Program-made: the position numbers and the translations under genes
Assembly: GCA_001643675.2 (NCBI GenBank)
Contig: LSRY02000031.1
Coordinates: 620,001-684,000, forward strand
Length of the DNA: 64,000 bases
From: Monocercomonoides exilis PA203
Lineage: Eukaryota > Protista > Preaxostyla
Direction: 5' to 3'
Shown here: positions 12,596-64,000 of the stretch, piece by piece
Numbering within the stretch: position 1 is the first letter of the stretch
Layout of the letters: each line of letters opens with the position of its first letter
Notes under the pieces: model-generated
Database searches by the model: none
The model's input: the letters and a program-made list of their open reading frames with translations, nothing else
What the model was told of the DNA's origin: nothing

Positions 12596-12893
12596 AAATT
12601 GTGTTCTTTTTTAAACAATTGTTGTTGTTTGATGGTCAGGGTTATCACAAAAATCTTCTTTTAAAAGTTGTTGAATGTTAAAAGGTTGCATCTCGAATAT
12701 TATTTAAAGGGTGTTGATATGATGAAGGAGTTTTTCATCAATCCTCCTTTTTTATGATGGGAATTCGAAAAAAGAAAACGTGAAAGCTGAACCATTTGAT
12801 GTGTAGAAATAGCACAACTGGGTTAAAGCGTTGGATAAGGGTGAGAATACAAGTTTGATTGCTCCTGCATTTTTCTTCTATTTCTCCTTCTAT

Positions 12894-13023
12894 TTCTTCT
12901 TCTTCTTCTTCTTCTTCTTCTTCTTCTTCTTCTTCTTCTTCTTCTTCTTCTTCTTCTTCTTCTTCTTCTTCTTCTTCTTCTTCTTCTTCTTCTTCTTCTT
13001 CTTCTTCTTCTTCTTCTTCTTCT
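12894..13023. repeat. (TCT)n trinucleotide microsatellite, about 43 units
   Basis: Directly visible pure run. Confidence 0.95.
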
Positions 13024-28949: not shown

Positions 28950-30480
28950 TTTCTGCAGTTGAAAATGTGCTTTTATTGTGAAACACATCTGCGAAGCTTT
29001 CAAATTGAACAGCCTGCCGATCAAAAGATAGATCATCTCAAATTAACAGCATCTTCATTACACAACAAAAAAATGCGATTCTGTATTCTCCCTCATCCAC
29101 ACATTCCTCTGCTTCGCTCCACTTTTGAAGTTTTATTCGCTTTCAATCTTTTTCTTCTTCCGATACGAGGCAAATGCCTTCCGCTTCTTCTCAGCCTGCT
29201 CCAGCGCCTTCTTCTGCTCGTCTTCGAACTTTGACCGCTTTTTCTTTGAGTTTTCTTTCTCTTCCTCTAGCAGCTCCTCTCTCTTCTTCACTGCCTCATT
29301 CTTCTGCATCTTCTCCATCTTCGGCTATATCGCTTTCTCCAACTCAATTCGTTCGATGTGGTTTGGAATAGCCGACAATTTTGGCTCAGGAAAGCACATT
29401 GACGAAGAAGGAACGGGATGCAATATTTAATTGGTGAAAGTTGGGGTATAGGTGGAAGATGGAGATATAGATAACTTTGAAAAAAGATGTGAAAGTGATG
29501 GTGATGAAGAATGTGAAGCATTATCAATATGATAGAAATCAGATGGAATTTGTGAGGATAGAGAAGAAGGTTATGATGATGATAAAGAAGAGGAGGAAGG
29601 AGAAGAAGAGAAGGATGCTGATCTAGTTGATTGGAGCGTTGACTGAAGAGTCTGATTTGGTCCATTTAACGTTGTGTTAATAGCATTTTGCTGATTAAAA
29701 GGCAAGCTTATAATTCTTTCTGCTTCTCTTTCTCTTTCTTCTCTCAGATTCTTTTCTTTTATTCGCCTCAATCTTTCGTCAAATTTCATTCTCGCCTTCG
29801 TTCATTGCTCCTTTCACTTCATTCCATCTTTCACTTTCTCCGCTATCCACTTGTCATCAAAAAGCGCAATGTGACATATAGATATCAGAATCAGTATTCT
29901 TTCTGGTGTCAGCAACGAATTTGGCGAAAGAAAAACTGTATTCTTTTTCTCCTCTTTCCTCCTCTTCATCCCTTCCAATGAAGCATGAATGCTGCTTTGT
30001 GGAGCCTTTGTGTGTTTGCTGGAACTTTGTGGAGAAATCAACGAAGAAATCTGAGGGGAAGATGAAGACGATTCCTGTGATTGAGAATTAGATGGGCTTA
30101 ATGCTTTGTTTGCAATTGTGTTCTTTGATCCGAAGGAATAATCTTCGTCTTCTTGGAACAGAACCATGTCATCCTTGCTGCATTTCTTCCTTTTCGCTGT
30201 CATTTTGTCTTTTCCTTTGGATCACTGAAAAACGTTTTGTTGCTCTGGAAAAAGAAGAAGAAGATGATGAAATCACTGAATACGTGTAACGAGCATGCCT
30301 GCCTTTCAACGAAGCTGACTTCTATGCTTCAGAATTGCTGCAATTCAGCTAGCTCAGCTCGCTTTTCCATCTCTCTTCTTCCTCTTTTTCTTCGACACAA
30401 AATTGCTCATTTCCTCTTTCATTTTTCCTCATTGCATTCTCCCCTACTGCTTCTGCTTCCTGCTTTTTAACAATTTAGCA
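28950..30480 (-). pseudogene. Degraded coiled-coil/low-complexity gene fragment
   Basis: Consecutive short minus-strand ORFs (29814-30203, 29571-29789, 29133-29318) with K/E-rich protein-like text separated by stops and frameshifts. Confidence 0.3.
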
Positions 30481-32369
30481 TTTGGGAGAAAATTTTTGAA
30501 AAAGCACCACAGATCAAAAAACATCACCCATTACAGTTAAAGAAATTCAATATTTTGAATGAAAATTTATTCAAACTCTTTATAATTAATCACAAATTGA
30601 CTTTTTTATCAGAATATGTCTTTAAAAAATTTTTTGATTTAAAAACATATTTGGATCAAAATGAATTTGTTTTAACCACTTGAATACGTTTTCTTCACTA
30701 AAAGAACGCTCAACAAAATAAGATAATTGAAGCGAAATACGTTACTGAAAATTTCCTTTGGATAAGAAGGATGAAAGTGCTTGAATTCGTATCAACACAA
30801 TGTCTTTATATCTCCAAGCTTTTGATGTCTTGAATTTGAGCAATATCAAACAAATCGCTTTAATTATAACATATTCAATCAAATCATTTTATCAGGAGTT
30901 AAATTATGGAATCCAAGAATATTTTCAGAGATTATTGCATTTTTTACGTGTTGCACAATTCTGAAGTGGAATTTAATCGAATGGTAATTATCTGCTGTTC
31001 TCTGTCATTAATGCGGGCAGCTGGAAACTTAAATGTCACAACAGATCTTTGCGTTTCTTGTCAAGATTCGATTTTCCTTTTTTATTTTCAAAACGGAACA
31101 GCATGCCATGAAATCTTGAGTATATTTCTCATAAAGAACAGTCGTCGTTCCTGTCTTGTTTTTTCTTCATATGGTCTGGCCAATGCAGTGCTGAGAGATC
31201 ACACTTTATGAATCTTACAGTTTTCTCATCGGACAATTTTTAATAATCAGAAAAGAGCAAAAGCTAACCAATTAATTACTATGCCTTGAATTTCATTTTA
31301 CGCAAAACTACAAAAAATTCTTTTTTCTTGTCAAAGGCATTCAGTCATTCGAAGTCAAAAAATGGAACTCCTTCATCTAATCATCAATGGATGCATTTGA
31401 ACAACCGTCTCTCATGATAATTAAAGGTCACTGGAACAGGAAAAAATAGACATGCGATTGTTGAATGTTACTCATGGAAATAGACGCTCTTCAAAATCAG
31501 AGTTTGCGTTAGCACAAAAAATAGTAATAATGGAACGTTGCAGATAACACACGAAAATCAGATAATAGCTTTTTCAGCAGTTTTGATGTTTTTATTATAT
31601 TCAAAAAGCAATTCATCACAAAGGTTTTTTTTTTATTTTCTTTCTCTTTTTTATTTTTAAGTTGCATTTATTGAGATTGTTAGAAGAATCTCCAGAATTC
31701 TGCTCCAAGGAAGAGAAAGAAGAACATACACATACACAGGAGCCTGGAAAAGTGGACAATGAACGAAGAGTCATTTTATTCATTGGAACAAACTATCGAA
31801 AATATGATGAACTGCAGTCGCAATGAAAGAACATGTGAAATGGGCTTGCGTTCGAAGCGAAAGAGATAAGTTGTCGTGAAAGGAAGAATTTTCGGAAGAC
31901 AATTAAGAGGTCTCTTCTCCCACAGAAGACACGGAATTTATTGAAAATCCAAATTTTCTTCAAGCAGAGCCACATAAAGATCTTATGCATTCGTCCACTG
32001 CGAATCTAGATAGCCTTGAAACGCTATATGCAAAGCAAATAATATCCCAAACATTTTTTCCCAGTGGTTGAAGAAAAGCAGTTATGCATTTTGCATCTCA
32101 CTGATCAACAGACAAAACATCTTTCTCGGTAAAAATGCTCCAATCGCTACAAACTCATCTTAAGGCTCTGTTTGCCAAACCGAGTATAAATGCAGTTATG
32201 CTTCAACTGAAGGCAAATGTCCGTTCTCATCCCTTTCTCTTCTCTTCTTTTCTCCAACTCTCCAAAAGCACATCGAACCTTCTACCTTTCTTCTCCTTCA
32301 ACACATTCATTTCGATCATTCATGACTTCATCATCTTCATCCTATTCCTCATCTTTTTCCTACTCTTCT

Positions 32370-33835
32370 CTAGTAGTGACCAGTCTCTCTTTCCACCCCA
32401 CCCCATCGTTCTGAGATTGCCATGATGAGCCGCATAAGAACAATGCACTGTCTACTCCACCGGATCTATCTCAACCGCTGTGCACAAATAGCTGCTGCTT
32501 CTGGTGCTTCACGTCCTTCTTCTTCTTTTTCCTCCATCTCGTTACGTGGATTGTTTCACAACAAATTCCTGACAGGGGAAGAGCTGCAGATGAGGAGGAT
32601 GAGGCAGCAATTCGGAAGAAGAAGGAAAAGACAATATTTTGTTCTCCCACCAGATGTGTTTGAGGCGCTGCAGCTGTTTGCAGAGTTTCGGATGGTGGAG
32701 CGGTATTCGGAGAATCTGGAGAAGAGGAAAGGAGAAAGAGAGGGAGCGAAGGAAAGAGAGAGAGAAGCAAGGAACGAGAGGAGAGAGGAGAGAAGAATAA
32801 GAGAAATGATTAAGATGAGGAAGGAGTTGAAGCCTGAAAATGATGTAAAGAATAATGATGATCAAAATGAAAATAAATTAAAAACAGAAGAAAACGAGAG
32901 TTTATCATTGATGAGAAGAAATTCTTTGAAGGAAACGAAGAAAAATGAAGAAAATGAAGTTTTTCATATAGCTCCATCTTCAGCCATGAAGACAGGAGAA
33001 GAAAGATGAGACACAAACAGAGATAAAAACTGCTTCGGCTGATGAAACTGCAGGAAATACAGAAAAAGAGGGATGAGAAAGAAGAGAAAGAGAGGAGGCG
33101 GAAGAAGAAAGAAGAGCGAGAGCGCAGGAAAATGGAGAAAATGGCGAAGAAGATAGAGGAAAAAGACAAGAATCTGTTTAGCAGCATCCAGGAAATATTA
33201 CAATCACACCTTGGGTCAGGCACACAGATCAACCAGAAAGAGAACAAAATGGCAAGCGATGTGCCACAAGAGGCGAAAGAAAGCCAAACGCCAATTTTGA
33301 CAAGAGAGCTGAAATCGGACAGCGAGCTGAATGATTTAGCAAATTCCGACATAGAATATTTGAGCGATGAACTGGATGTGCCTTGCCGTTATGAGCGTAT
33401 CAAAAGCGAGGAAAACGGGCAATTTGTGTGGAAGATGCGAAAAGTGCCTGTGTATGCGGCAGTCGACACGAGGCAGACGAGAACGTGGTTGAATCTGATG
33501 AGTGCGCTGAAGAGTGGGCTGAGGCAGAACAGTGCAGAATTGCGAAGAGGAAGCATAAGTGACTCACAGAAAGGGAAGGAAAGGAGAAGGGAAAGTTTCA
33601 CCTCTGTTGTTTCAGAAGGAGAAATGGATAAGAACCTTTTGTCAGAGCTGCATGCATGGGAAAAGAGATGAGCTGTCTTTCTCAAAGTTGGCGTCTGACT
33701 TCACATCTCAGAATTCAATGGTGATGGATCTGATGCAGAAACACCCTGCCCTCAATTTTGTTGCGCCTTTTGATTCATCTGCTGATTTTTTTTAACTGAA
33801 AATACAAATATTGATCTGCATCCTCTTTCTCACTG
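32370..33835 (+). pseudogene. Pseudogenised copy A of an unknown multi-copy gene
   Basis: Colinear with 44745-47030 (YLNRCAQ, YFV.PPDVFEAL.LFAEFRMVER, LSDELDVPCRY.RIKSEENGQFVWKM); frameshifts and stops. Confidence 0.6.
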
Positions 33836-36348
33836 CAAATTACTATTCATCATCTGCTTCTTCTCCTTTCATTCTCTTGAGATCTTTACCACCGCCACCG
33901 TAGATCATTCAATGAGCACATTACGCTTATGGCTTCAACATCTCATTCATCTTCGACAACAACTGCTTCTTCTGCTGAGAGAGAAGACATTGAGCTGGAG
34001 AGCTGAGTTCTGAATGCGTTCTTACAGTGTGTATGAAGGAGGTCAAAATGAAAGAAGAAGAAGAAGAGAAGAAGGTAAAGAATGATATAAAGGGATATGA
34101 TGGATTTGTAATAAAATTCTGTGAGTCTTTCGATTGAGAATGAAGCAAAGGTGAAATATCAATGTTCTCTGCAAGTCAAAGATTTACAGAATTTTGCGTA
34201 CCTATTAATCATCCGATTCTTATCACCGCATCCGAGTGCTGGAAGAAGAATGCGAAATCATTGACTTTGTTTGATAATGTCCAATCAAATGAAGTTTTTG
34301 CTCCACTTCCAAACACTTCTCCTCTTGCTCTGCTAGCGGCTTATTCAATCTATGAAGAATTTATTGCTTTCCCCGAAATATTTTCGATCTTTTTTTCGGT
34401 AATTCTCATAGACATTGGAACCCTATGAGCCACATCCTCACCATTGATTAAATATCTGACTCTTCACTATCTTCTTTTTTATCTTGTTTGGAGTGCTGGT
34501 CAGACTGTATCATTCGCACCGTCTCAACGCAGATGCTCATGAGGCAGCTCATCATTTGCTCCTCTTACAGACGTGTATGTTCAACGCAAGTGGAACGACG
34601 TGTTGTTGGAGATGATTAAAGTTGAGAAGAAGTAGATGAAGGAGAAAAATTCGACGAGGTGCATTTTATGTAAAGCACATGTGTTTCATAATGATGATAA
34701 AAAGCTGATTGTTTTTATAAAAAAAGTCGGATCTTGTGTGGATGCAACAACATTATCCGAAATAATATCATTACAAAGATAATTTCAAGATTTTCTTTCT
34801 TATTAACTTATTATTGTTAACTTTAAATAACTGTATTTTTCCAACACCTTTTTTAATCCAAGTTTCATTCTTTTAAAAAGATATTTCTTTTGTTATCAGA
34901 AATACATCCAATATTTTCTAGTCATTTGCAATAAAGTTCTATTGCAGATAATATTGCACTCTTTTGAATGAAGATAAGAAAAATTATTGGAAATAAAAAA
35001 TGTGAAGCTTATTGTTTCGATAAAGCATATTGAAATCAATTTTGTTTAAAATAAAAAGGAATTTTGTTGGTTTTTACATTGTGCAGTGAAATCAAAACAG
35101 CAATTCTTTTGATAGAGATGTGAAAGAAGAAAAACCAAGGTTAATTTGTTCGAATGATTTAGCTTTTTTTGATAAATTTTTCGTTGTTCATTGTATGATA
35201 AATGAAATCAAGGAAGTTACTGTCTGTAGATATTCATGAAAATAATGTAGAATAACACACAAAAGGAATAACAAAATTTTTTAATAATGATTATTGTGAT
35301 TTAAATCAAAAACATGATTTATTGTGGGACAGATCAGACTAAAAAAAAGTGATTTTTCAAAAATTTTCACCCATTTATATTCTTCATCTGAAACGACATT
35401 TCCTGACAATTGTTATTCTTTGAAGAATAAATAACAAAAGATGTTCTTCTTTTATCTTCTATCTCCAAATGGACCATTCAATCAACGATTCTTTTTGATG
35501 TTCCATCTTTTCCAATTTTGAAAAGAATTCTTATGTTCAATTCTTTTTTCACTTTCTCTTCCTCCTTCATAACCTTATGAGCTTAATAATGCTCCTCCCT
35601 CCTCTTGTCCAGCTTCTTTTCCATGTTCACCCTAATCTTCCCTCTCCTCTTCCTTTTCCTGCTCTGCGCTGCTTCAATCAATTTCAGCTTCATTTTCCTT
35701 TGTTTCTCAGTTGTAAGCGAAATGATTTTTGAATACTGGTTGAACAAAGATGTCTCCATACGCCTATACCCATTCCTTTTCATGCTCTTCCTTAAGGTCG
35801 TCCAACAGAATTCCATGTAGTTCTTAGAGAATTGTTTATGCTTTCGTCCACCATCTTTAAACTTGTGCTCTTTGAATTGAGACTTCTGCTTTTTTTTTTC
35901 ATTCTTTATTTATTCTCACCAATGAATATTATTTTCTTCTTGTCTGCCCTTCTTCACTCCACTCTTCTCCTTTGTTCTCTTGCGCTTTCTGCCTCTGCTC
36001 CTTATGGAACTCTTTCCACACTTTCTCTCTCCACTTCCTCGAAAAAATCATCTTGCTCATCTTCATTTCCCTCAATTTAGCTTTCATCTCTTCAAGATTC
36101 CTGTATAGCTTTATCCTTATTTCACGTGTATTCTTCCACTTTCTGCTCTTCTTCATTTATTTTTGTTCTGTGTGTGGAGCTTATCCAGTACTTAATACAG
36201 TTCTTTTCTTGACTTTTCTATCTTTCACACAATGCTTTTGTTCCGTGACATTTCATTTTTCCGATTCACTTCCTAATGAAAAAAGCAATTATATATATTG
36301 ATAATAATTTCATATCACACGGTAACAGCAATACAATAATTGATTTTT

Positions 36349-36949
36349 GAGTATTTTGCAAATTGATAATAAAAACAAACTTTGTCAAAAATGAACAACA
36401 GTTATCAAAGTCACATTGAATAGTATTTATGTTTGTATCAGCAAAAATTGTCTATGTGCCAAACAAAATAACCAGTTTCTAAATAAATAGGTCAAAATTC
36501 TTATATTAATGAAAAATAACAACGATTTGTTCCAAACCTTTTATACAGCTTTGTCATTACAAGTCAGACGTCCTCACATATTAAATATATAGAATGACTG
36601 AAAAAAAATAAGAAAAATCTTCGAAGACAGTGCATGGGAAACAATTCATTTCACACAACACTTCATCCCAAATAAAAAATATGTTAAAAAACAAATTATT
36701 ACCAACTTTTTCCACTAACAGATTTTCAAAAAAAAGCATCAGACATGTTTATTATCGTTATTTATTCACACTGAGCAAAATAGATCATGGTATTCTTAAT
36801 GGCGCCATTAATAATAATTTGTATTTTTTATGATCAAAAATTTCAAAAATTTTTCAAAATTTTTTATTTTTGTTTCATTTTATTTGTGAATATTATTGCT
36901 TTATTAATGCAAACATGTCATCAGAAATTAGTTTTGAATTTTTTATTGT
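36349..36949 (+). repeat. Left terminal inverted repeat
   Basis: Base-by-base reverse-complement match to 41947-42545; identical 67-aa spurious ORFs at 36630(+) and 42063(-). Confidence 0.92.
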
Positions 36950-37762
36950 TTGAATAAAGGAGAAAATATGTGTTTTTATTTTTCATTGAATTTTCATTTC
37001 AAATGAGAAAAATATCTTTGAAAAATAAAACACTTAAAAATTTTTTGTTTTTGAATGAACATGTTTATAATTATTGTTCTATTCAATGTATAACTGTTTT
37101 GATATCAATATCTTCATTGTTGAGTAACTACAACGGTTGATGTATATTCAGTGATGAGAAAAACATTAAAATAAATTCATTGCTAATTCGATAACAATCA
37201 TAAAACAAAATAACACACAAATAACAACAGCACTTCTTTGTATTAATCAGCTTAAATATAGAAAGCAACATATATGTTTCTTTTTTTGTTGCATCACTTT
37301 CAATGAAACATAATTCTATCACATCATCATGAAACAATTACCAAAAATCAACTAAATATCAACAATTTTGAACAATAAAAAATATAAGAAGAAATAGCAC
37401 AATTTCAACAAATTCGTGGTATCAAAGACAATTCAAAACACAAAAGAATACAAATACTTTAGGTGTAAAAACAAACTTGACTGTTAATCCTTTGTTTTCC
37501 ACCTACTCCACCCTTTCTGATATAACTCTTGTCCTAACTCAAAAAGATCAAATTCAACAGAGAAAAAAGGCAGACACAGTGATGAAACATCACTTCACAC
37601 CCTCAGCTATTCTCCTTTCCAAAAATCTAATCCAAAAATCATTGAAACACTTCACAACACCCATCAAAAAATGAATCTCTATTAAGATATACATATATTA
37701 ATTTCGGGACAATTACCAAGTGAAAATAGGGACATTATAGGGACAGAAACAGTGAGAAAACA

Positions 37763-37908
37763 ATCGGATTCTAACTATTGTGTACCTGGGAGGCTGTTCG
37801 TCGTATCCAGGTCCGGATAAAGCAGCCCGAAGGCTGCAATATCTAATACGAACAGTCATGTCCAGCACCCTTCCGATAGAGTGCCAGCTAAGCATACACA
37901 ACAACTAG
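37763..37908 (-). ncRNA. Structured RNA element (multi-branch fold plus likely pseudoknot) immediately 3' of the transposase stop codon
   Basis: 15-bp closing helix with G-U pairs that work only on the minus strand, GCAGCC-UUCG-GGCUGC hairpin, 10-bp stem with AUCGGA loop complementary to downstream UCCGAU; GC-rich island in AT-rich DNA. Confidence 0.6.
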
Positions 37909-37912
37909 TTTC

Positions 37913-40900
37913 TTAAAAAGGGACACTATTAATACAATTTTGAGATTCATTTAAAGATGAAGAGTCAAGAAGAAGATCAAATCTTCTTGAAAGAAGATCT
38001 TGAGAAGATTGAGAAAGAAGAGAAGAGTTAGATGATGTGATATCAGAGTGAAATGACTTTCTTGAACGTTGAACTTTTTCTTTCATTGTTGAAGATTCGA
38101 GGGCAACCAGAGAGCGTTGAGGAAGATATCCAACAGCAGATGCGCAGACAAATGAGCCCTTGCGCTCAAAGTATAAATAGTCCTTCATGTGAGGGACTGA
38201 CAGTGATGGCCATGAAATTTGCTGAGATGGTACATACTCTTCAAAGTACATCTCATGCACACACTCCTTGATAGATGTTGACGATGGGGAGTTGTTTGAT
38301 GAGGATGATTCAAAAATATTCAATTGTGAAGATGATGAAACAGATGTTGAAACATTCATATTGTTTTCGAAGAAGTTGATTAAGTCATGAAGTGTAGTGA
38401 TGTGTTCAGTTGATAGATTGTTGTCGATTGAATTAACTAATGCACCAAATTCACTATCACATATATTCTTTCCGTGGTGCTCAGCGAAGAAATTGAGTTG
38501 TGTATTTTTCTTTTTAAGAAGTTTTGATTGTTTGGAGAGGATGAAGTGAAGAAGGAAGCGATTTCGGTTGTGTGGACCTGAATCGCAGAAGAACTTAAAA
38601 GTGTGAGTGTCTGAGAAGAAGTGTCTTTTGATCACAGATTCCAGACACTCAATAACAAATCTGTGATCATTTGAGAGGCAGTCGGAGAAGAAGTTGAAAG
38701 TTCGTTTTATTTGTTGATTATTAATTTTTTGAAGAGAGATGATTGTGAATTGAGATACTTGTTGATAATTGAAGAATTCTTGTTGAAGTTGATTTTTTCT
38801 GATGGGGAGTTTCCATTTCTCTTTGAAGTCGAAGACGAAGACTGCTTCTCCCTCTTTCAAATTATCAACAGTTGATTGATAGTGTTTGCGTTGCATTTCT
38901 GCAACAAGACGATGTTGTCGAAGAAGTTTGAGTGTATGAAACTCTGTAGAAGAAAGTTTATTTTTGTTTTGAGATGACTTTAATTTGTTCTCAAGATAGT
39001 TCAACTTCTCACACATGCCGCAGAGGTCTGTGCGCCTTTTTGCTTTGGAGAAGTTGGTTGTGAGTTTGTAGAAGTGTGACAAAGAAACTTTAATATTTGT
39101 TTCTTCGGAAAACTCTTTCCATAATTTCGTCTTTGGCTTGAAGATTAATCTCTTTTCATTGGGAGAAAAGATGCCCGTTTTCTTTCTTCTTTCTTTTAGT
39201 GCTTCCAATCCATAGTTAGTTGTTATTGATGAAGAAAGTTGTGGAATGGAAGAAGAATGATGTGGTGGTGTGATAAACGATGATGATGGAGTTGTGTCTG
39301 TGTTTGTGTTGTTGATATTAAAAGATTGAGAAGAGGAGGAAGAAATAGAGGAACCACCAAATTGAATAGTTGGATGCGTAGATAGTGAGTTTTCTTTTAC
39401 GTAGAATGAAAGTGAAGGAGTGTAACCCTGTGCGTAAAGTTCTTTCCAAGTCTTAGTCCAATTGTCACTATCAAATTGTTTAATATCATCATCGTTGCAG
39501 GTGATCCACATCTTTCTAATTCCTTTCTTTCTTTCCACAACAGCAATGTAATGACCATTACTGTTATCAAACTGTTTGTGAAGAACTTGACCAATGAAAT
39601 GATAGAATGTTGTTTCTTTATTGTTGTGAAATGTTGAATCTTTTTCATTTGCATATCCTTTGCAAAATGAACGTTTGTTCGACAGATCAGTCTCGACAAG
39701 AAGCGTTCGAGAAGGTGGAGAACTTGCAGGATCAGTACATTCATGGGAGAGGGCAAGTACTTCTGGAAATGAAATCATTTCTTCCCACCTTGCAGTGCAG
39801 CATTTTTCTTTGCACTCTTCACAATATACACAATTTTTCCCATCTAGTATTTCAGTTGAAAACAAAGAAGACAAACCATTGTGAGTTGATGAAGAATTGA
39901 TGATTATGCTATTGTTGATGTTGTCGATGTGTGATGTGAGTTTTTGACATTTAAAACATTTGAAATGAGAAATCAAAATAGGACAGAAGCAATCTTTCTT
40001 TATCAATCCATCTTTTTCGAAAAGTCTATGAAGATTATCGAATGCCTCTGACACATTCTGCTGCTGCTTGCTTCCGTATCTGCAAAAATTTTCCCATTTG
40101 CTAACAATTGATGGGATCCATGAATGTACTTTTTTTCCATCTTTGAGGATTTGATTGCAAATACTCATCATTTGAAATGATAATGTTTGTTTTGAGCGTG
40201 TTTTTGAAATGATTGATGGTTTTTGTGAAGTGATTGAAGAAAAACACTGAAGAAGAGAGGCAAGATAACATGTGTTGCCTAAATTGATTAATCCTTTAAA
40301 ACTAGTGTTTGTTATGTTTGTTAAGTTTTGTGAATGTGATGAAGGAAATGGAGATGTTAACGGATTAGAAGGATGAAGATTCATTGTGTTGTTATTTGAA
40401 ATGTTTTTTAATGATCTATTATTGTTTGTTAATTCGTTTTGATTTGATTGAGGTGATTGTGATGGAGTAATTGAAATGTCATTATTTTTTGGAAATGTTG
40501 AGAGAAGATTTTGAAATGCCAGTGGAGGAATAAGAGAGGGAGAAGTGGCATATTCAATCAATTGACCACTAATCCACATATTTTCGTTGCTAAAGGATGA
40601 TGAAACTTTGTCTGTTGGAGGAGTATTATCTATTTCTTTCTTTTTCTTTCTAATTGATGATGATGATGAGGATGATGATGATGAGGATGATGAGGATGAT
40701 GATGATGAAGAAGACGATGATGATGAAGAAGAAGAAGATGATGATGAAGATGAGGATGATGAAAATGATGATGAAGTTTTTTCTTTGTAAAGTTTGTGAA
40801 TAGGAATCAGTGATGGAGAAGAATGACGATGATGAAATGAATTTTTTTGTTTAATTCTTATTGTCTTTCTTTCAGCACGAAGTGGAGTGCTGATTGGATT

Positions 40901-41766
40901 ATTTACTGTTTGAGAAGGTGTATTATTTGTAGAAGAAGGTTTCACAGATGGAATGACATTGGCATAGTTGCTGCTTTGATTTGTTTTTTTCGATGACGAA
41001 GATTGTTTTTTGTTTGAATTATTTTTTTCTGTAATAATAATATCATCCCATGCAGATTCCTCTATGAACTGTGCGTAATCTGGAATTTTTTTTGATCTTT
41101 TCTTGGCTGATTGTAATGAAGTTGATGCCTCTGTGGAATGGGCCAACATCCAATTGTTGCCCTTTTCCCAATCTTGTTCATTAAGACCTTAAAAAAAAAT
41201 AAAAAAAAATAATTGAAAAAATAAAAAAGCTGTAAAAAAAAGAAATCATTATAAAATTTAATACAAACCACTTTTACATGATGGTGGGTGAGGCAATTGT
41301 GCTGGTATTAAAAATCCTTGGTTTTTTGTAAGAGTTTGTTTTGCATAATTATACTTTCCTTCAGTAATGTCAAATCCATAGTCCAGAAGCTCAGATAATG
41401 ATGCATTGCGCGTCAGTGCTTGTAGGATCATCGTTTGCGTGTGTAATTGTGCGTTCTTGTACACAACTGAGAGATCTTTCAGAAGTATTTCGTAATATTC
41501 TAAGTTTTTTAAATAACAAAAAAATAAATATTAATAATTAATGAATATAATAATAGATAAATTAAAGTTATTAACAATCAAAAAATTTTGAAGTCCAAAC
41601 CATTCAAGGATTTCAGCAAATCATTAATTACTGAAGATGATTTTCTGTAGTTGTAAAACAGATAGACGAGCAATGAATCAACGTCATCTCCACCGATGCG
41701 TTGGATTTCTTTCCACAGAACGTTGCATCGTGAATTTAAAGTTGACTCTTGTTTTGAAAATGACAT
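37913..41766 (-). CDS. Sola-like DDD transposase with embedded ubiquitin-specific protease (peptidase C19) domain; exons 41766-41601, 41499-41269, 41187-37913 (~1223 aa)
   Basis: USP: GLINLGNTCYLASLLQ, QQQNVSEAF, CFKC/CEEC, GHYIAVV, WITCNDDDI. Transposase: IKVSLSHFYKL, TDLCGMCE, VFVFDFKEK, FFCDSGPHNRN, FFAEHHGKNICDSEFG. Two GTTTG...AG phase-1 introns join the exons in frame (3672 nt). Confidence 0.85.
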
Positions 41767-41946
41767 TTTTTTGATAATTACAATTTATTATGGAATTATT
41801 ATCAATAAATAATAAAAATGACAACTCTACTTTTATCACTTTTATTGAATTTTCAATAAAAAAATTTCGACAAACAATTACAAATAAAGACTTTTTAACT
41901 CAAAAAATAAATAAAAATTTTGAATTTATATTAAATTACAAATTGG

Positions 41947-42545
41947 ACAATAAAAAAATAAAAACCAATTTTGGATGACTTGTTTGCATTAATAAAGCAA
42001 TAATATTCACAAATAAAATGAAACAAAAATAAAAAATTTTGAAAAATTTTTGAAATTTTTGATCATAAAAAATACAAATTATTATTAATGGCGCCATTAA
42101 GAATACCATGATCTATTTTGCTCAGTGTGAATAAATAACGATAATAAACATGTCTGATGCTTTTTTTTGAAAATCTGTTAGTGGAAAAAGTTGGTAATAA
42201 TTTGTTTTTTAACATATTTTTTATTTGGGATGAAGTGTTGTGTGAAATGAATTGTTTCCCATGCACCGTCTTCGAAGATTTTTCTTATTATTTTACAGTT
42301 ATTCTATATATTTAATATGTGAGAACGTTTGACATATAACGACAAAGCTGCATAAAAGGTTTGGAACAAATCGTTGTTATTTTTCATTAATATAAGAATT
42401 TTGACCTATTTGTCTAGAAACTGGTAATTTTGTTTGGCACATAGACAATTTTTGATGAAACAAACAGAAAGACTATTCAATGTGACTTTATTAATTCTTG
42501 TTCATTTTTGACGAAGTTTGTTTTTATTATCAGTTTGTAATACAT
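41947..42545 (-). repeat. Right terminal inverted repeat
   Basis: Reverse complement of 36349-36949; the last few bases are degenerate. Confidence 0.9.
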
Positions 42546-44744
42546 TATGAAAAATGCATGCTTTTTATTTTGAATAAGATTTTGAACAATCAACTTTGAA
42601 CTTGCTCTTATTCTCACTAACCAACATTTTTTAGAGGGATTTGCTTGTTGACTTCAACGACAATTTTGTTTGTGTCTTTATTGGTGATCTGCAGCGAATC
42701 GCCTGTCGAACAACATTGGCTTTAATAAGTGAGAATACTTAAGTTTTTTGTACATTTGAACCCATTCAATAAAATTACCAATAATCTCTACATAAAATGT
42801 TATGAAAGAGCGATTTTTCATTTGATGCTGTTTGTTGATTTTTTATTTTTTTGATAATATTGCTTTTATCTCATTTCTTGTTAATCAAATTGATCTTTTT
42901 CAATATTTTATTTCAATAAATACAATCAATTAGTTTCAAAACATAAGTCAATTCCTCATCTTATAATTTTTTCAATCAGTTTTGATTGAGAAGAATGTGC
43001 AATGAATCTTTTCAATGTGCTCTTTCCAGCATTTCTGTTGCTATTGGAAATAGAGCAGATAAAAAAGATTGAACTGGGAACCAAATACACCGCCTTTTCT
43101 GCTACGACTGTTATCTCTGTGATACAGCTGACTGTTCATCCCCTATACATCCAGACTTCCTCTTCTCACAAACCACAAAACATTTCTTCTTTTTGTCGTC
43201 AATGTCTTTTTCTTCTTCTTCTTCCTTTCATAACTGTCGTCCACAAACCGCTTTATTGTTTTTATGATCGAAAAAGTCGAATGCACATCACAAAAAGCAG
43301 AAATTCTCTCCTCATTCAAACAAAAGACCTCCTCTTTTCACTGACACTCCATTTCTTTTGTTAATAACACTCCATTCAGATTCTTCTGAACTTCTTCTAA
43401 TCTTCCTCTCAATAGTTCCATTTGGTATCGACACTTCGTATTAGCTCCCACAAAATGCTCTCTTTCATATAACAACTCTTTTAATGGCATCTCTTTCATG
43501 GACTTCATCGCAACAACAACCAAAGCTGCCAAATGTTCGCACATCACATTCTATAACAGATCTTCAACATTTTCCAAATCATCGCAACGTTCTTCTTCTT
43601 CTTTTTTGATGTCCTCCTCCTGCAGAATGGGACATTAATAAACAGATCGCTCAATTCTGCACATCGTATTCATATGCTTTCACACCTTAAGCGCATTCCT
43701 CAATCAATAACGTCGTTTCTTCCTTCCTCTCTCCAAGCTTTGTACCACCGCTACTGGGTATTTCAAGCACACGTATTTAAAAACAAAAACACAACAGACA
43801 GAAAAATGGAGTCTTTTGCATCATTTTTCTTCTATTACTTACAGCTGCGTCGGATGATGAGTTGAAGAAATTGTTGTTCCCTATGAGAAATTTATCAATG
43901 ACAAATAGGTTAGATGATGAAAGATAATGTCAGAGAAGGAGAGAGAAAGTGAAAAAGAAGGAAGAGAAATTGAAAAGACTGAAGATGAAGATAAAGAGAT
44001 ATCTGCGGAGCAATGCAGATAAAACATCATTTTCTTAATCTGTTTCTTTCTCTATTTCTGCTTTATCTTCTTTTCTTTCTCTTTCTTATAGTTCCTTCTC
44101 ACTCACTGGAATGGATTCAGATACTGGCAGATATATAGATACAAAAAATGACTCAAAACTGTCTTTTTTTATTCTATCGTACGGACAACTTCTTATGAAG
44201 ATGGAACAGAAGGAAGATGTTATGATAAAGAAGATGGTGAAAATGGACAATAAGGAAATGATAAAGAAGATGATTGTTTAATCTCAACTTCTTCTTCTTC
44301 TTCTTTTGATTCTTCAACATCGTCATCAAAAACAGCAGAAGTCGAATTCTTCAAGAAAGAAAAAATAGAAAACGATTCATCTTCATCTTCATCTTCCTCT
44401 TCATCCGAACAGTCAGAAGTGAATTCTTCACAAGAAAGAGCCGAAAAAGCAGAAAATGATGAAATCATCGAAGGCTTCAAAAGAAAACATGCGCCACGTA
44501 TACATCTTCCTGTGATCCTTCCGCCTCAAGAAGCAACTCTTCAGAATCCGTCTTAGGTGCTTCGAAGTCAAAGACAGAGAAAAAGCAATCAAAATTCAAC
44601 ACAAACCTTTTTGACACATTCGATTGCTGGCATTGGCACAGGAAGAGGAACATCTCCTTCTTCAATGAAAAATAAATCTTTTCTTTCTCTTCCTCAATCA
44701 TCTCCTTCACCCTCTCCTTCATCTTCATCTTCCTCTTCTTCTCC

Positions 44745-47030
44745 AGCAGTAACTGACCTCTCTCTCCATCCCAAACCACCTCATCGTTCTGAGATTGCTA
44801 TGGCTCGCCGCATAAGAGCAATGCATTCTCTCCTCCGCCGACGCTATCTCAACCGCTGCGCGCAAGTTGCTTCTGCTTCATGTTCACAGTGCTCTTCTTA
44901 ATCTACTTCTTCCTCCTCGTTTCTTCGCTCTTCCAGAAACAGAATTCCGACAGGCAAAGAGCAGCAGATAAAGAGGATGAAGCAACAGCTCAGAGGAAGA
45001 AGGAAAAGGTAATATTTTGTTTTCCCACCAGATGTGTTTGAGGCGCTGCCGCTGTTTGCAGAATTTCGGATGGTGGAGCGGAATGCTGAGAATCTGAAGA
45101 AGAGGAAGGGAGAAAGAGAGAGAGCGAAGGAAAGAGAGAGAGGAAAAAAGAACAAGATTATTTATTAAGTTGAGGAAGGTATTGAAGCCTGTAAATGATG
45201 AAAATAACAATGATGAAGAAAATGATAATAAAACAAAAGCAGAAGAAAACGAGAGTTTATCATTGATGAGAAGAAATTCTTTGAAGGAATCGAAGAAAAA
45301 GAAAGAAACTGAATGCCTTTCTGTCAGCTCCATCATCAATGATGAAGAACAACGAAAAGAGAAGAGACACAAACAGAGAGAAAAAAAGAGATTGATGCGA
45401 AAGTGTTTCCAGGCACTTGAGTTTCAACGTGATTCTGTTGTGAATGAAGTGCTTTTGATGTTCAGACAAAACAAGCCGATTTCTCCAGCACCGATTGACG
45501 ACTCGATAAAAAGACCAGGAATTAATGAAAATGCTGCAAAAAGTGAGGGTGGTGATAAAGAAGATGAGAAAAAAGAGAAAGAAGTCAATAATCCTGTGAA
45601 TGCAGATGGAAACAAGGAAGAAGAGAAAGGATATGAAGAAAACAATAAAGATGCGACGAAAAAGGATAAGATGATTCAAACAACGATGAAAACGAAGAAG
45701 TGAAATTGGAGGATTCAATGAACAACACCAAAGAAGCTGTTTCTAAAGCAATGAAAATAAAACGGAAGCAGAAAAGAAAACTAATGCAAAAGAGTCCATA
45801 ACAAACAAAAAAGAAGAAACACATTCCGAAGAGCCTTAATGAGAGCCTTTTTCATAGGAAAAGCAGCAAAAACAACTCCCTTTCCCCCACCTTCACCTTC
45901 ACATTCTCCTCAACCTAAACAACATTCTTCAGCAAGAGATGCCTTTGCAACGATACACTTTGCACGAGGGAAGCGAAAGGAAGGCGGATGGAGATGGAGA
46001 GAGGAGATGTTGGTGCAGCAACAATGCTATTGTCACCTGCTGTTGGAGGAGGAGGAATTGGAGGAGGAGGAGGAGGAGGGGTGAAGTTTGGTGTGATGGG
46101 GATGAAGGATTTGAACAAAGAAGTGACAAGGGCGATGCAAGATGAGTTTCAGAATGAGAAAGTGAAAGAGAACGATGAAGAAGCGAAGATCACATTTAAT
46201 ACATTGGAATCTGATGATCAGAGAGAAAACCTGCTTCGGCTGATGAAACTGCAGGAGATACAAAAGAAGAAGAAGGAGAAAGAAGAGCAGAAGCACAGGA
46301 AAATGGAAAAAATGGCGAAGAAGATAGAGGAGAAAGACAAAAATCTGTTTTGCAGCATCCAAGGAATATTATAAAAACATCTTGATACAAACCAGAAGGA
46401 GAACAAAATGGTAAGCGATGCACTGCAAGAGGCGAAAGAAAGCCAAACTCCATTTTTGACAAGAGAGCGGTAATTGGACTGCATGCTTAATGATGTAGCT
46501 AATTCTGACTTTGATGATTTGAGCGATGAACTGGATGTGCCTTGCCGTTATGTGCGTATCAAAAGCGAGGAAAACGGGCAATTTGTGTGGAAGATGCAAA
46601 AATTGCCTGTGTATGCAGCAGTCGACGCGAGGCAGACAAGAACGCGGTTGGATCTGATGAGTGCGCTGAAGAGTGGGCTGAGGCAGAGCCGGGCAGAGTT
46701 GAGAAGAGGAAGGGGGATGAAGTGGAGGGGCTAGTGGACATCCAAAGAGGAAGCAGAGGCTGCACTCATGAAAAGAAAGGAAAGGAGCAGGGAAAGGATC
46801 AACTCTGCTGTTTCAGAAGGAGAAAGGGAAAAGAACATTCATCCAGAGCAGCGTGCCTGGACTAAGAGATGAGCTGTCGTTCTCAATATTGGTATCTTTT
46901 CTCACTTCGCAGAATTCAATGGTGATGAATCTGATGCAGAAATGTCCTTCACTCAATTTGGAAGCGCCTTTTGATTCAACTGCAGAATTTGACGCAAATT
47001 CAAACATTGCTCTTCATCCTCTTTCTCACT
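44745..47030 (+). pseudogene. Pseudogenised copy B of the same unknown gene as 32370-33835, with ~0.8 kb of extra internal sequence
   Basis: Shared peptide blocks with copy A; in-frame stops (RRKR*YFV, IQGIL*). Confidence 0.6.
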
Positions 47031-47885
47031 GAACTTCATCACTTGTCAATTCTTCCTTGTTTATGAACATCCAACAACAATCTTCTCCTTCTCTCTGAAC
47101 ATCTTTATCTCCTTCCCTTTTTTCTCAAACTGTTCATCCATCTTCAACTAATTCAGCTATTCCAAGCCTCCTTCCGCTATCACTTCCTGCCTTAACTTCT
47201 TCGTCTCCTTCTTTTTCATTCAACTCCCCTCGAATTCATCGTCAGGCCTCATCTTTCATTTCTATTCAGAATCACAGATAATTATTTATTCTAATAATGA
47301 ATAACAGCTGAAAGTTTATTACGACGGAAGCGATTCTCCACAAAGCAAAAAATAGTTTGCACGTTATCAACAACTGAATCAATTCTGGCCTTTTCATTTG
47401 GAAGCTGAAGCATATGAAGTGAAAAGGAAATGGCATAAAAGCAATTTTTCTTTGGAATGAATAAGTTTGAAAATATCCTTCGACTGATTACACATCTCCA
47501 AAATTACAGCGAATTGTTGAAAATGAAACGATGAGTGAGAAAAGCAATTTTGAGGAAAAGGCTAAAGTGAAGAGAAATTTTTTGAGCCTCTAGCGCTGAT
47601 TGGATACAAGTTAGTTGGAATCAGAAAATTGAAGAAAGTATAATCTGAGAAAATTTTTAGATATGCTTGAAGAAATGTATTTTGAAGATACGACAGCAAT
47701 GAATCTTTTTTCATGAGCTTAATTTGTAGTTGATGAAGAAAAGAAAATAATTGAGGTAATGACGAAGAAATGTTTTTGTTTAGTTGATGGTATGAGTTTC
47801 AGAAAAAAATAATGATGATATATACTCCAATTGAAAAAGCTATGATAGCTTATGAATTTTTCTATGATATGGAAAATGAAAGAAT

Positions 47886-48155
47886 TTATATGAGAACCTG
47901 AAAAAATACATCTTTTCCATAAATTTTTGTGTCAACTGTGCTGAAAGTGAGTGTTTGAGTTTGAGTAAATATTGAGGTGAGGAGGGTGAGGGAGGCGTCT
48001 TGCAGGAGGGAAATGAAGCCGGTGAGGGCATACTCGATGTTGGCACATGGGGTCTGTTGGGGTCTGCCACAGGCATAAGCATCAGTTCCTCTGTTAGAAA
48101 CGATTTTATTCAAAGTGATAAAGAGGATCCAGATATTGAACTTGACTTTATCCAA
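47886..48155 (-). pseudogene. Fragment or single exon of a CG-x4-PC repeat surface protein related to the 2590 aa protein family
   Basis: GTDAYACGRPQQTPCANIEYAL resembles DFSKCGFEEFPCSSISKAV and NVVVCGLLEYPCRSVDYGV; no continuation recognised. Confidence 0.45.
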
Positions 48156-50470
48156 TGTTTACTATTTCATCTAACGCTTGATGAATTCGATGAAACGAAT
48201 AAAATGAATGGAAATTTGATGGACTAATAAAGGAAAGGGAAAAAATTGAATAATAACTATTATCAACAAATTGGTTTCAATAGTTTTGTTTTCCTATCAT
48301 TTTTTCTGTTCTTCTTATGAACTTTCTCTTTGCAATGTTTAATTTTGTCAATAATGAATTTTCAATTTTTTTTTCCTTTTGAAGTTTTATTTATTCGTTA
48401 AAAGTTAATTTAAATTAAACTTGATCAAAAAATTCTTTTTAATGAAAAAAGGTATGGATTATTGTTTAAGAAAATTAAACAAATAAATGTTTTATCAATA
48501 CATGCTGAATACCCATGAAAAATCAATTCTTGTTATCAGAATAAAAAAAACTATTTGATCAATAAATACCACTATAGATTTTATTTTTTCGATTTTTGAT
48601 CTTTTTTTATGATTTCAAAAAAAATCACCCATATCTTATTCTTCTTTTCTTCATCGTTTCCAATCCTTCGCTTTTATTTTGCTCTGCTTCTTCTTCTGCT
48701 CCATTTTCATTGCCTGCTGAAACTTTTTCATCCATCATCTCTTTTCTCTTTTTCTCAACCACAGGTATTTGTGCACCTTTTTCTTTCTAATGGTGTTTCT
48801 CTATTGGAGAAAAATCACCAAATACGCTTTTCTTCAGATCTGTTGAGGACAAATGTGAAGAAGACGATGTTTTATATGACGAAGCTGAACCGCACAATTT
48901 GGATGAAACAGGAGCATCTGCAACAGGATGAACTCCAGTGTTCAAAAATGAAGAGATTTTAGTAAACGGAAAAGTTGCAGCCTATAAAGATTCTAACAAC
49001 ACTTCTACCAAAGCTTTTCGATTTGATAAATTGAAAAGTTTCCAGGTCGAACAAATGAATTCTTTATTTTTTTTTCAAATACCTAATTGTCACATTGTTG
49101 CAAAATGTGTGCCAAATGTGTGATTGTTTTTAATATCATATTTTTTCTTTCAAAATTTTCGGTTCGAAAATTTGTCTTTCATTACAACTTTAAAACAATG
49201 AATAATAAAAGGGGTTAATAAACCATATTTATTATTATTTGAGCAAAAGTATATTTTTTTAAAAACAGTTGTGGCAAATACTCAAATTGAAGATAAAACC
49301 TCTTTCCATCGACAAACAACCTTTGAATAATTAGCACCCCCATAAAAGTTATGAATTTTAAAAAAAAATCACCCAAATAATAAATTTTTTATTAAAATTT
49401 TTTGGTTCAAATATCAATTGATGATTATTTATAAATGAACACTGAAAAAATTGGATATATTCAATGATTCTTTAACTCCTTTGTCTATTCTAACTTTGAC
49501 TTTTGCAATAATTATCATGCATTCAACATTAGTGTATTTTTTATTTGACAAATGACGAAAAACCTTTAAATATTCTTCACACAGAAAAAAGTAATAATTT
49601 GGTTAATAATCATTTATTTTCAATAAGAAGCATTTGAAATATAGCAATTTCGATTAAAATTGTTGAAAGAAATACTGAGCTGCTCTTATTGATAGATTTT
49701 AGAAATTTTAAAGTTTTCAATGAACAAAAATTGAAAATGCAAAAATTCTTGAACATCATCAGAAACAATGGATAGTGGAGAAATCTGAACGACAGTTGAC
49801 GGCTGTATCAAGATCACAGACTTTTTTATTAATCACACAAATGAAAACATATATGAGTTGTTTTCATTGTTTACGAAATTGGTGAATTCATTGAAATGAA
49901 ACCATCAACGGTTATCGAGAAAACGTCATGATCCTAATTTTTTTATTGCACTCCTGAATGAACAAAAACAAAACAAATTGGTCTTTGATTTTTGTGAAAA
50001 TACAACTTTTGCATTATTTTCAAAAAAAAATACTAAGATTTTTTGTTTTTGATCAAATTTCAGTTCCTATTCATGAAATTAAAATAGAATGGTTTTCATT
50101 GCTTCAGAAAGATAATAAATCCATATAGAAAAAAATTAAGAATGTGAGATATTTTATTTTATAAAATATTGAGAAATTCTTTTATTTTGATAAATCAAAC
50201 AGAAGTGATTTTTTTTTTAAAAAAAAATTATTTCTATTTCTTTGACATGAAAATGAAATTTTCATATCAAAACTTATTTATTTTCAGTGTTTGTTTTTAT
50301 TTTCAAGTGCAACCGCTCAGACAAAAAATTAATATTAAAATTGCACACACATTTGTACAAACAAATTAAAAAGCTCGTGGAAAAAGCACTATAACAGAAT
50401 GATAAATAATAATCGATTTGTGTATCAATAACAACAATAAACATTTTGAAAAAATTTGTAATAATCAGAA

Positions 50471-63500: not shown

Positions 63501-64000
63501 CTTTCTGTCTATCTTTCGCAGAATCCATTTGACAGGCTGTCAAAATTTGTGTATCCAAAACAGTGTTTAATGGCACAGACAATGCAGATGACAATAAAAG
63601 GGCAAAATAAACAAGAAAACAGAGAAAACAGAGAAAATCAATATAATCAATATAATCAGGAAAATGAAGAAAACGATGAAAACAATGAAGATGATGAAGA
63701 TGATGAAGATGTGCAGCAATTCCAAAGGATTGAAAGAGGAGGAAGAGGAGAAAGAGGAGGAGGAAGAGAAGGAAGAGGTTATTTGAGCAAAGAGAAAGAA
63801 ACAGAAGATATCGAAAGAAGCAGAAACGCACAAGAAATGTTTCGATTAAACAGAGAAACGCAGCCAAATTGCTTGAAAACGCCTTCAAATGACCCAAATA
63901 CAGGAATGCTGACATCCAGAAGCAATCAATACAACACTTCTTCTTCGTCATCAACATCATCTTCTTCTTCTTTCCCTTCTTCTTCTGCTTCTTCCACATC
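60546..64000 (+). CDS. Large Ser/Glu-rich low-complexity protein with TFxP motifs; continues beyond the window (exon 1 60546-60673, exon 2 from 60767)
   Basis: Frame-consistent intron; coiled-coil segments ending in KEFTFHPSI and EEATFHPHL; absent from the ORF track probably because no stop lies in the window. Confidence 0.6.

Follow-up and report, generated by a model that had tools for sequence, protein, structure and literature searches.

The Locus

The window analyzed here is a stretch of 64,000 nucleotides of Monocercomonoides exilis PA203 (contig LSRY02000031.1, positions 620,001 to 684,000). Between positions 26310 and 48630 of this window lies a Sola2-type DNA transposon. It is 22.3 kb long here, and 17.4 kb once a nested 4.9-kb relative is subtracted. 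The sole recognizable enzyme of the element is encoded by a gene that joins a ubiquitin-specific protease (USP) domain to a transposase. This gene is bracketed by inverted repeats of about 600 bp, and an earlier note, made from the sequence of the window, had taken the repeats for the ends of the transposon (36349-42545). We find instead that this unit is an internal cassette of a larger Sola2-type element of about 17-22 kb: there is no duplication at the repeats, the flanking sequences are repeated together with them and the real ends are at 26310 and 48630. Overall, we consider it very probable that 26310-48630 represents a copy of a giant Sola2 cut-and-paste DNA transposon, with the transposase and a USP deubiquitinase domain in a single protein. 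The element has the following features.

26306-26309, no strand: left 4-bp target-site duplication, ATAT, read from the sequence; the same four nucleotides follow the right end
26310-26339, plus strand: left terminal inverted repeat (TIR) of the outer element, GGGTGATTTTTTTTGATATCATAAAAAA..., found by its inverted match to the right end
30484-35372, plus strand: nested 4.9-kb non-autonomous relative with its own TIRs, GGGAGAAAATTTTTGAAAAA and GGGTGAAAATTTTTGAAAAA, and the duplication ATTT at 30480-30483 and 35373-35376
36333-36949, plus strand: left arm of the internal inverted repeat; the self-match starts at 36356, and other copies extend the arm to 36333
37913-41187, minus strand: exon 3 with the stop codon (coding 41187-37916), encoding a serine/asparagine-rich linker, USP, CxxC motif, DDD core and C-terminal tail
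38330-39052, minus strand: Sola2 transposase core, aa 700-940, with RRTDLCGMC, D774 (FDFKEK), D856 (CDSGPHNRN) and HHGKNICD898
39464-40294, minus strand: USP (peptidase C19) domain, aa 286-562, PF00443; catalytic residues C294, H533 and D553; zinc ribbon of the form CxxC...CxxC
41269-41499, minus strand: exon 2, 231 nt, phase 1 at both ends, from GT..AG introns and conservation in 18 copies
41601-41766, minus strand: exon 1 with the start codon at 41766, from reading of the sequence and an 18-copy alignment
41947-42540, minus strand: right arm of the internal inverted repeat, from the repeat finder
42541-48600, plus strand: right-hand body, made up of a C segment (to about 44697) and a G segment with lysine/glutamate-rich open reading frames (ORFs); both recur beside USP-transposase genes of other lineages
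48601-48630, minus strand: right TIR, reverse complement GGGTGATTTTTTTTGAAATCATAAAAAAAG, from the inverted match and a pattern search
48631-48634, no strand: right 4-bp target-site duplication, ATAT, read from the sequence

The USP-Transposase Gene

The gene is read on the minus strand. Our comparative gene model comprises three exons with 3669 nt of coding sequence (1223 codons) and is intact, in agreement with the earlier note, which had seen one intact spliced gene between the repeats. Both domains are contained in an uninterrupted ORF of 1078 aa (37913-41149). Upstream of the methionine of this ORF the frame remains open and conserved for 13 codons in every lineage (GLNEQDWEKGNNW). The introns at 41600-41500 (101 nt) and 41268-41188 (81 nt) run from GT to AG and are both of phase 1; the AG acceptor of exon 3 is at 41189-41188. 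In 18 aligned copies, conservation of the exons is of the wobble type and no gap breaks the frame; the introns are poorly conserved and contain indels.

From its N terminus, the protein consists of a conserved N-terminal part, a serine-rich linker, the USP domain, a CxxC motif and a DDD Sola2 core with an RNase H fold. Its nearest proteins in the databases are MONOS_ entries. The upstream exons, searched singly against Pfam, had no match. By eye, exon 2 resembles the N-terminal region of Sola2_PPa-1, a likeness that BLASTP does not support.

The USP Domain

The USP motifs that had been recognized from the sequence are complete and lie where they had been placed. PF00443 matches aa 286-562 of the 1078-aa ORF with an E-value of 1.2e-14 (55 bits against a cut-off of 23.9; profile positions 2-241 of 254). 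The match includes the Cys box GNTCY (aa 291-295), the His box GHYIA (532-536), the Asp box CNDD (551-554) and the four invariant cysteines of the zinc ribbon. By sequence, the nearest solved proteins in the PDB are USP12, USP46 and USP34 (E 2e-6 to 5e-4).

The catalytic residues are kept throughout the family. All 21 intact copies retain C294/H533/D553, D774/D856/D898, the CxxC motif and the four zinc-ribbon cysteines, and these copies are 58-98% identical across the USP domain. We calculated ratios of nonsynonymous to synonymous divergence (dN/dS) as Nei-Gojobori medians over about 200 pairs. The ratio is 0.31 in the N-terminal part, 0.21 in the USP domain, 0.21 in the linker, 0.05 in the transposase core and 0.23 in the C-terminal tail. 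Both the USP and the transposase domain are under purifying selection. The USP domain is predicted, most likely, to be an active thiol deubiquitinase in the service of the element.

The two halves of the protein do not always share the same degree of divergence. Some copies are 89-96% identical over aa 621-1078, yet just 57% identical over aa 1-625. To judge from these alignments, the halves have evidently been reshuffled by modular recombination.

None of 19 transposase homologues from outside Monocercomonoides contained a UCH/USP domain when scanned, and a USP profile built from the fusion copies matched M. exilis proteins exclusively among the 173 collected.

In this genome the family of USP domains has expanded hugely. 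With a stand-alone USP (described below) as query, 128 of 275 candidates had scored matches; they fall into several subfamilies and are 25-36% identical. The open frames that match range from about 360 to about 1300 aa, many of them 1000-1200 aa long, and one, at C80:1108789 (locations elsewhere in the genome carry a C number), has 5878 aa.

The Transposase Domain

A Pfam search of the C-terminal half returned no family. With aa 600-1078 as query, an exhaustive HMMER search retrieved 661 proteins at E<=1e-3. Those that carry a name belong to Monocercomonoides, Blattamonas and Heterostelium; for ten of them Pfam gave no family. Ten positions are invariant among 42 diverse homologues: D708, C710, C713, H746, D774, D856, H892, G893, K894 and D898. 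A profile search with the alignment of these 42 homologues mainly retrieved M. exilis copies and a few metagenome proteins.

The earlier note had placed three acidic residues of a DDD module near 38829, 38583 and 38457. These are D774 (38828-38830), D856 (38582-38584) and D898 (38456-38458), so that the reading was correct to the base; the CGMC motif is at aa 710-713. The suggested module also has the fold to be expected of it. Our AlphaFold 2 (AF2) model has a mean predicted local distance difference test score (pLDDT) of 71, with 85-97 in the core, and has the RNase H order of elements, b1-b2-b3-a1-b4-a-b5-a. In the model D774 is on b1, D856 follows b4 and D898 is at the start of the next helix, which are the canonical catalytic positions.

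Structural comparison agrees with this reading. Against 48,161 chains, the top matches in VIA-align are the integrases of foamy virus (PFV, 10.6), simian immunodeficiency virus and human immunodeficiency virus, with Z 10.6-9.7. Further matches are Metnase and Mos1 (Z 10.0-9.8, with 10.0 for Metnase and 9.9 for Mos1), IstA (Z 9.1) and TnsB (Z 8.3), so that integrases and transposases together span Z 8-10.6. The top matches have a root-mean-square deviation of about 3 A across 141-180 residues. Foldseek matches in the PDB were weak (Hermes and IstA, E about 2e-3). As modelled, the C-terminal module is a DDD transposase with an RNase H-like fold.

Which superfamily does the transposase belong to? 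One homologue, a protein of Heterostelium (= Polysphondylium) pallidum PN500 that we call P0126, matches the query in phmmer with E 7.9e-15. P0126 contains the exact strings CDFKENISLG, FWCDNARHFKS and NRTDMCPMC of Sola2_PPa-1. Hence, homology to a transposase that bears the name Sola2 has statistical support and goes beyond likeness by eye. We compared the family with the transposases of Sola2_DFa-2 and Sola2_PPa-1, whose sequences are in the supplement of Bao & Jurka 2013 (PMC3627910), and six blocks match: RTDxCPxC, DFKENI, E(F)Y, S(D/Q)VLNHC, FW(S/C)D...HFKS and (Y)HGKS..D. The supplement of Majorek et al. 2014 provides the cores of Sola1-1_AP, Sola2-1_HM, Sola3-1_HM and Zator-1_HM. Among these four, the Sola2 core alone has DF(A/K)EN, S..(x)HD and NFF...HG in common with the window family.

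By homology to the Sola2_PPa-1 transposase, shared motifs, 4-bp AWWT duplications, short TIRs and large size, the transposase belongs to Sola2. The earlier note had suggested Sola2 or Sola3, in part because of the long repeats. Sola2 is borne out by the homology and the AWWT duplications; the long TIRs are not, since the real TIRs are about 30 nt long and begin with 5'-GGGTGA....

We also considered an assignment to Zator or ISAzo13-like elements and rejected it, because neither the query nor the 42 homologues match PF07592 and because the duplication is 4 bp, not 3 bp. ESM Atlas clusters that look alike in features and shape carry DUF7869, to which 6 of the 42 homologues have a weak match. 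The sole link to Zator/ISAzo13 is one such DUF7869 cluster, in which 11% of the members also carry PF07592.

Termini of the Element

The outer TIRs are about 30 nt long and begin with 5'-GGGTGATTTTTTTTGA, with one mismatch within the first 21 nt. The left end pairs with 48603-48637 as an inverted match of 35 nt (97%). The terminus pattern GGGTGATTTTTTTTGA(T/A)ATCA has only two matches within the window, at 26310-26330 and at 48610-48630.

The same boundaries are found family-wide, and both are sharp. On the left, at least 40 genomic copies start no more than a few nucleotides from 26306, most of them within about 4. On the right, more than 30 genomic copies stop at 48632-48638. The C segment (from 42541) and the G segment of the right-hand body adjoin USP-transposase genes in several lineages, as mapped by the coordinates of the flanks. 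The G segment (44698-47100) has at least 40 copies of 77-81% identity. A Pfam search of the right-hand body (42541-48600) returned no family.

At one position of G-type segments we observed insertions of about 430 nt (C19:804137-804568, C91:699186-699623, C20:1004597-1005017 and C25:199130-199560). They are flanked on both sides by about 22-25 nt of the target. Either a small mobile element that leaves long duplications or an overlap of the alignments could explain them.

The element in the window has itself been a target. The nested relative at 30484-35372 contains a G-type segment (32328-33835, 79-86% identical to 44698-47031) and lacks the transposase. The copy at C12:173488-190455, which is the nearest sister of the window copy, does not have this insert. 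In the C12 copy and in others the empty site "...gcATTTaaattcttc" is preserved, and the sequence continues directly from the equivalent of 30483 to that of 35373. The nested insertion is thus a true comparison of a filled with an empty site. The nested relative entered the window copy after its split from the closest sister.

The Family in the Genome

We searched the M. exilis PA203 assembly (82,301,135 bp, 101 contigs) for further members. The terminus pattern with its 4-nt A/T flank has 1616 forward and 1620 reverse matches, and the reversed control pattern has 5 and 7. There are thus about 3,200 termini in the genome, compared to 12 for the control.

Neighboring termini also share their flanks. 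Among the first 100 exact termini listed, 27 neighboring plus/minus pairs are at most 25 kb apart, and 26 of the 27 have concordant 4-nt AWWT flanks (18 ATAT, 6 ATTT/AAAT and 2 AATT). For the eight concordant pairs that are not ATAT, the commonness of ATAT is no explanation.

The two termini around a USP-transposase gene lie 17-22 kb from each other, as at C12:173488-190455 and C11:761809-781631; further such pairs are on C5, C7, C8, C9 and C18. Many further pairs are 3.5-7 kb apart and presumably represent non-autonomous elements.

Further copies, for which the earlier note had proposed a search, are numerous, and for the nested relative the empty site is present too. The USP domain is not confined to the window copy either: searches of the genome found at least 43 gene copies with the USP-transposase fusion and at least 38 copies of the internal repeat. 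On C68 (182892-183439) a further element of the family truncates a USP-transposase copy; its GGGTGA terminus lies about 740 nt beyond the stop codon of that copy.

Unclassified repeats make up 35% of the Oxford Nanopore Technologies assembly of M. exilis PA203, and the genome paper leaves them unclassified (PMC8767320). The family described here may account for a sizeable part of them.

Internal Repeats and the Gene Cassette

The inverted repeats around the gene, which had been estimated at about 600 bp, are real. The repeat finder gives two arms of 594 nt (36356-36949 and 41947-42540) that are 95% complementary and separated by 4997 nt. The outermost 23 nt of the left arm have no counterpart in the right arm. 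At 36333 the identity between copies climbs from about 80% outside the repeat to 85-99% inside it.

We examined the ends of the 594-nt repeats in nine copies, and none has a target-site duplication for any assumed terminus. The sequences outside the repeats are themselves repeated and fall into three unrelated classes of flank. These flanks are neither a continuation of the inverted repeat nor part of a larger diverged palindrome; both were tested. A terminus near window position 36135, where two flank classes meet, was also rejected: the divergence profile has no jump there, and the true ends are further out. The 594-nt repeats lie inside the transposon and do not form its ends.

In any one copy the arms agree at 95-100% (99-100% in several), and between copies they differ by 4-10%. 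From this likeness within copies, the rise in identity at the outer edge of the repeat and the mosaic flanks, we infer that the arms are probably homogenized by gene conversion. In the window copy and in most others the gene is directed to the left end of the element; in C11:761809-781631 and in the copy at C7:1423939 it is directed to the right end. The simplest reading of the two orientations is that the cassette can be inverted relative to the outer termini.

The same repeats also occur with other cargo. In seven units of 4.2 kb, repeats of 95-96% identity surround a stand-alone USP protein of 614 aa (PF00443, E 1.3e-10) without a transposase. The flanks of the seven units are 96-100% identical, and hence the units derive from one event. 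The stand-alone USP aligns with the window protein over its whole length at 30% identity (E 6.6e-22 in a HMMER-scored genome search); a BLASTP comparison of the two found no match.

One of the 4.2-kb units is at C20:1025127-1029311, and it has six sister copies. On C20 and C2 the unit lies inside a rearranged large element beside a USP-transposase gene, and seemingly it does so on C65 and C39 as well. A segment of 3.4 kb with a CFAP65-like fragment of an immunoglobulin domain (PF24816) separates the unit from the USP-transposase gene.

Transposition and Alternative Explanations

How would such an element move? The transposase would bind the termini of about 30 nt that begin with GGGTGA, excise the element and reinsert it at AWWT sites. 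Elements of 3.5-7 kb that have the same termini and no transposase would be mobilized in trans. The gene itself is carried as a repeat-bracketed cassette, in one orientation or the other depending on the lineage, with the two arms of a copy kept 99-100% alike, probably by gene conversion. The USP domain might act, for example, on ubiquitin attached to the transposase or to host proteins where transposition takes place.

Two other explanations have to be weighed against a giant Sola2 element. In one of them, the 6.2-kb unit with its 594-nt repeats is an independent long-TIR transposon that is nested in a larger unrelated repeat or has inserted into it site-specifically. Three unrelated types of flank at the repeat ends, the enclosure of a different cargo (the stand-alone USP gene) by the same repeats in the seven 4.2-kb units, and the jump in identity at the outer repeat end, from about 80% to 85-99%, speak for such a transposon. 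However, the jump is explained equally well by gene conversion, since the flanks are mosaic too. Against it, no duplication is present at any repeat end that we examined, and the right arm stops 23 nt short of the outer end of the left. The copies examined in the lineage of the window share one position between the flank class labelled A and the C and G segments, C- and G-like segments stand beside the USP-transposase gene in other lineages, and the flanks diverge with the unit. Finally, the only transposase is a Sola2 transposase, and it is 26310 and 48630, rather than the repeats, that have ends of the Sola2 type. We therefore regard an independent 6.2-kb transposon as unlikely.

In the other explanation nothing moves by itself: the USP-transposase genes would be a domesticated and expanded, immobile family of host genes, spread by segmental duplication in repeat-rich and subtelomeric regions. 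Several copies are indeed near contig ends, several have long duplicated flanks, and other hugely expanded families of M. exilis overlap the unclassified repeats (PMC8767320). Strong purifying selection and the many intact ORFs would fit a host family, but active autonomous transposon families show the same pattern of selection. Moreover, the genes sit within elements with intact TIRs and duplications, and neither the DDD triad nor the CxxC motif varies. The insertion of a related element into the window copy after the split from its sister, empty sites elsewhere and about 3,200 termini indicate massive and partly recent mobility. A domesticated family is hence very improbable, more so than an independent 6.2-kb unit.

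Several points nevertheless count against a giant Sola2 element with a USP-transposase. ATAT is the commonest tetranucleotide flank and is weak by itself as the duplication of the window copy, so that the non-palindromic pairs elsewhere in the genome carry the weight. The pairing of termini in other copies is based on coordinates and four flanking bases. For expression and splicing of the gene the evidence consists of conservation. The AF2 model of the USP domain, built with 13 close copies, has a mean pLDDT of 36, and the fold is taken from Pfam, the PDB sequence matches and the motifs. Over the same pairs, dS is about 1.1 in the USP half and about 0.4 in the core, a difference of about three times; either the halves have had separate histories via recombination, or their dN/dS values are less comparable than they appear. 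Lastly, an action of the USP domain on ubiquitin and its importance in transposition are predictions.

The role suggested in the earlier note, in which the element would deubiquitinate itself or chromatin, is conjectural. With regard to the role of the USP domain, we tentatively propose that it is active and that the Sola2 transposase needs it in cis. As a built-in countermeasure to ubiquitin-dependent restriction or turnover, it could have helped the family to reach about 1,600 elements, and the stand-alone USP genes could supply the function in trans. We put this proposal forward as a possibility that is somewhat more likely to fail than to hold. If it is true, this would be the first case of a cut-and-paste transposase that brings along a deubiquitinase of its own.

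Relation to Known Elements

The closest known relatives are the Sola2 elements of dictyostelids (DFa-1/2/3 of Dictyostelium fasciculatum and PPa-1/4/5 of Polysphondylium pallidum). These are 10-15 kb long, with short imperfect TIRs and 4-bp duplications of ATAT, AAAT and ATTT (Bao & Jurka 2013, PMC3627910). The M. exilis elements resemble them in a homologous transposase (P0126, E 7.9e-15), with the blocks RTDxCxxC, DFKEN, S..LNH(C/D), W.D...HF(K/R) and (Y/H)HGK...D in common. The likeness extends to the short imperfect TIRs, the AT-rich 4-bp duplications, extra cargo, non-autonomous derivatives and a very large size, 17-22 kb in M. exilis compared with 10-15 kb in dictyostelids. Giant Sola2 elements thus range from dictyostelids to metamonads.

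The two groups differ in what they carry and how they carry it. In dictyostelids Fanzor1 is a separate passenger protein, whereas in M. exilis the USP domain is inside the transposase polypeptide. The PPa-1-type protein P0126 has no Pfam match and hence no USP domain. The cassette with 594-nt repeats sets the M. exilis element apart as well, and the terminal sequences are different (5'-GGGTGA... in M. exilis).

Proteases that act on ubiquitin are known from another class of transposons. UCH domains have been stably captured in Helitron-like HLE2 elements (PMC11417382), and Helentrons contain VTD and OTU deubiquitinase domains, of which VTD has been demonstrated biochemically to be active (PMC9741609). 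As in M. exilis, a ubiquitin-directed cysteine protease is a stable part of the coding region and its catalytic residues are conserved; the role suggested there is to shield transposition proteins from ubiquitin-dependent degradation. Unlike the element described here, Helitron-like elements move by a rolling-circle RepHel protein with an HUH endonuclease and a helicase and have no DDD/E transposase, and the activity of the M. exilis USP is a prediction.

Ulp1/C48 SUMO-protease domains occur in Mutator-like and CACTA elements, usually as separate ORFs. There, too, a protease for a ubiquitin-like modifier is tied to a DDE cut-and-paste transposon. The clan is C48 instead of C19, and the modifier is SUMO.

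The earlier note knew of no USP-bearing transposase. For DDD/E cut-and-paste transposases this agrees with the literature, in which we found no description of a USP domain in such an enzyme; for transposons in general it is too broad, because PF00443/UCH has been reported in Helitron-like HLE2 elements (PMC11417382). With this fusion a known theme, that of transposons carrying proteases of the ubiquitin family, gains a new example. The USP class on a DDD cut-and-paste transposase joins the OTU, VTD and UCH domains of Helitron-like elements and the Ulp1 domains of Mutator and CACTA elements. Independent recruitment by unrelated classes of transposons suggests that ubiquitination by the host is a general brake on transposition. 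In M. exilis, the family offers a compact system of a single polypeptide in which this idea can be probed.

Surroundings of the Element

On both sides, roughly 8-15 kb from the element, there are ordinary host genes: 8381-11704 on the minus strand and 56859-58562 on the plus strand. They encode a longin protein of the MON1/FUZ type and an Ist1-like protein. An ORF of 2590 aa at 16041-23813 (minus strand) belongs to no clear family. A tandem array with a period of 6 nt occupies 12870-13023, and related low-complexity stretches are at 2500-2950, 10030-10380 and 62360-63515.

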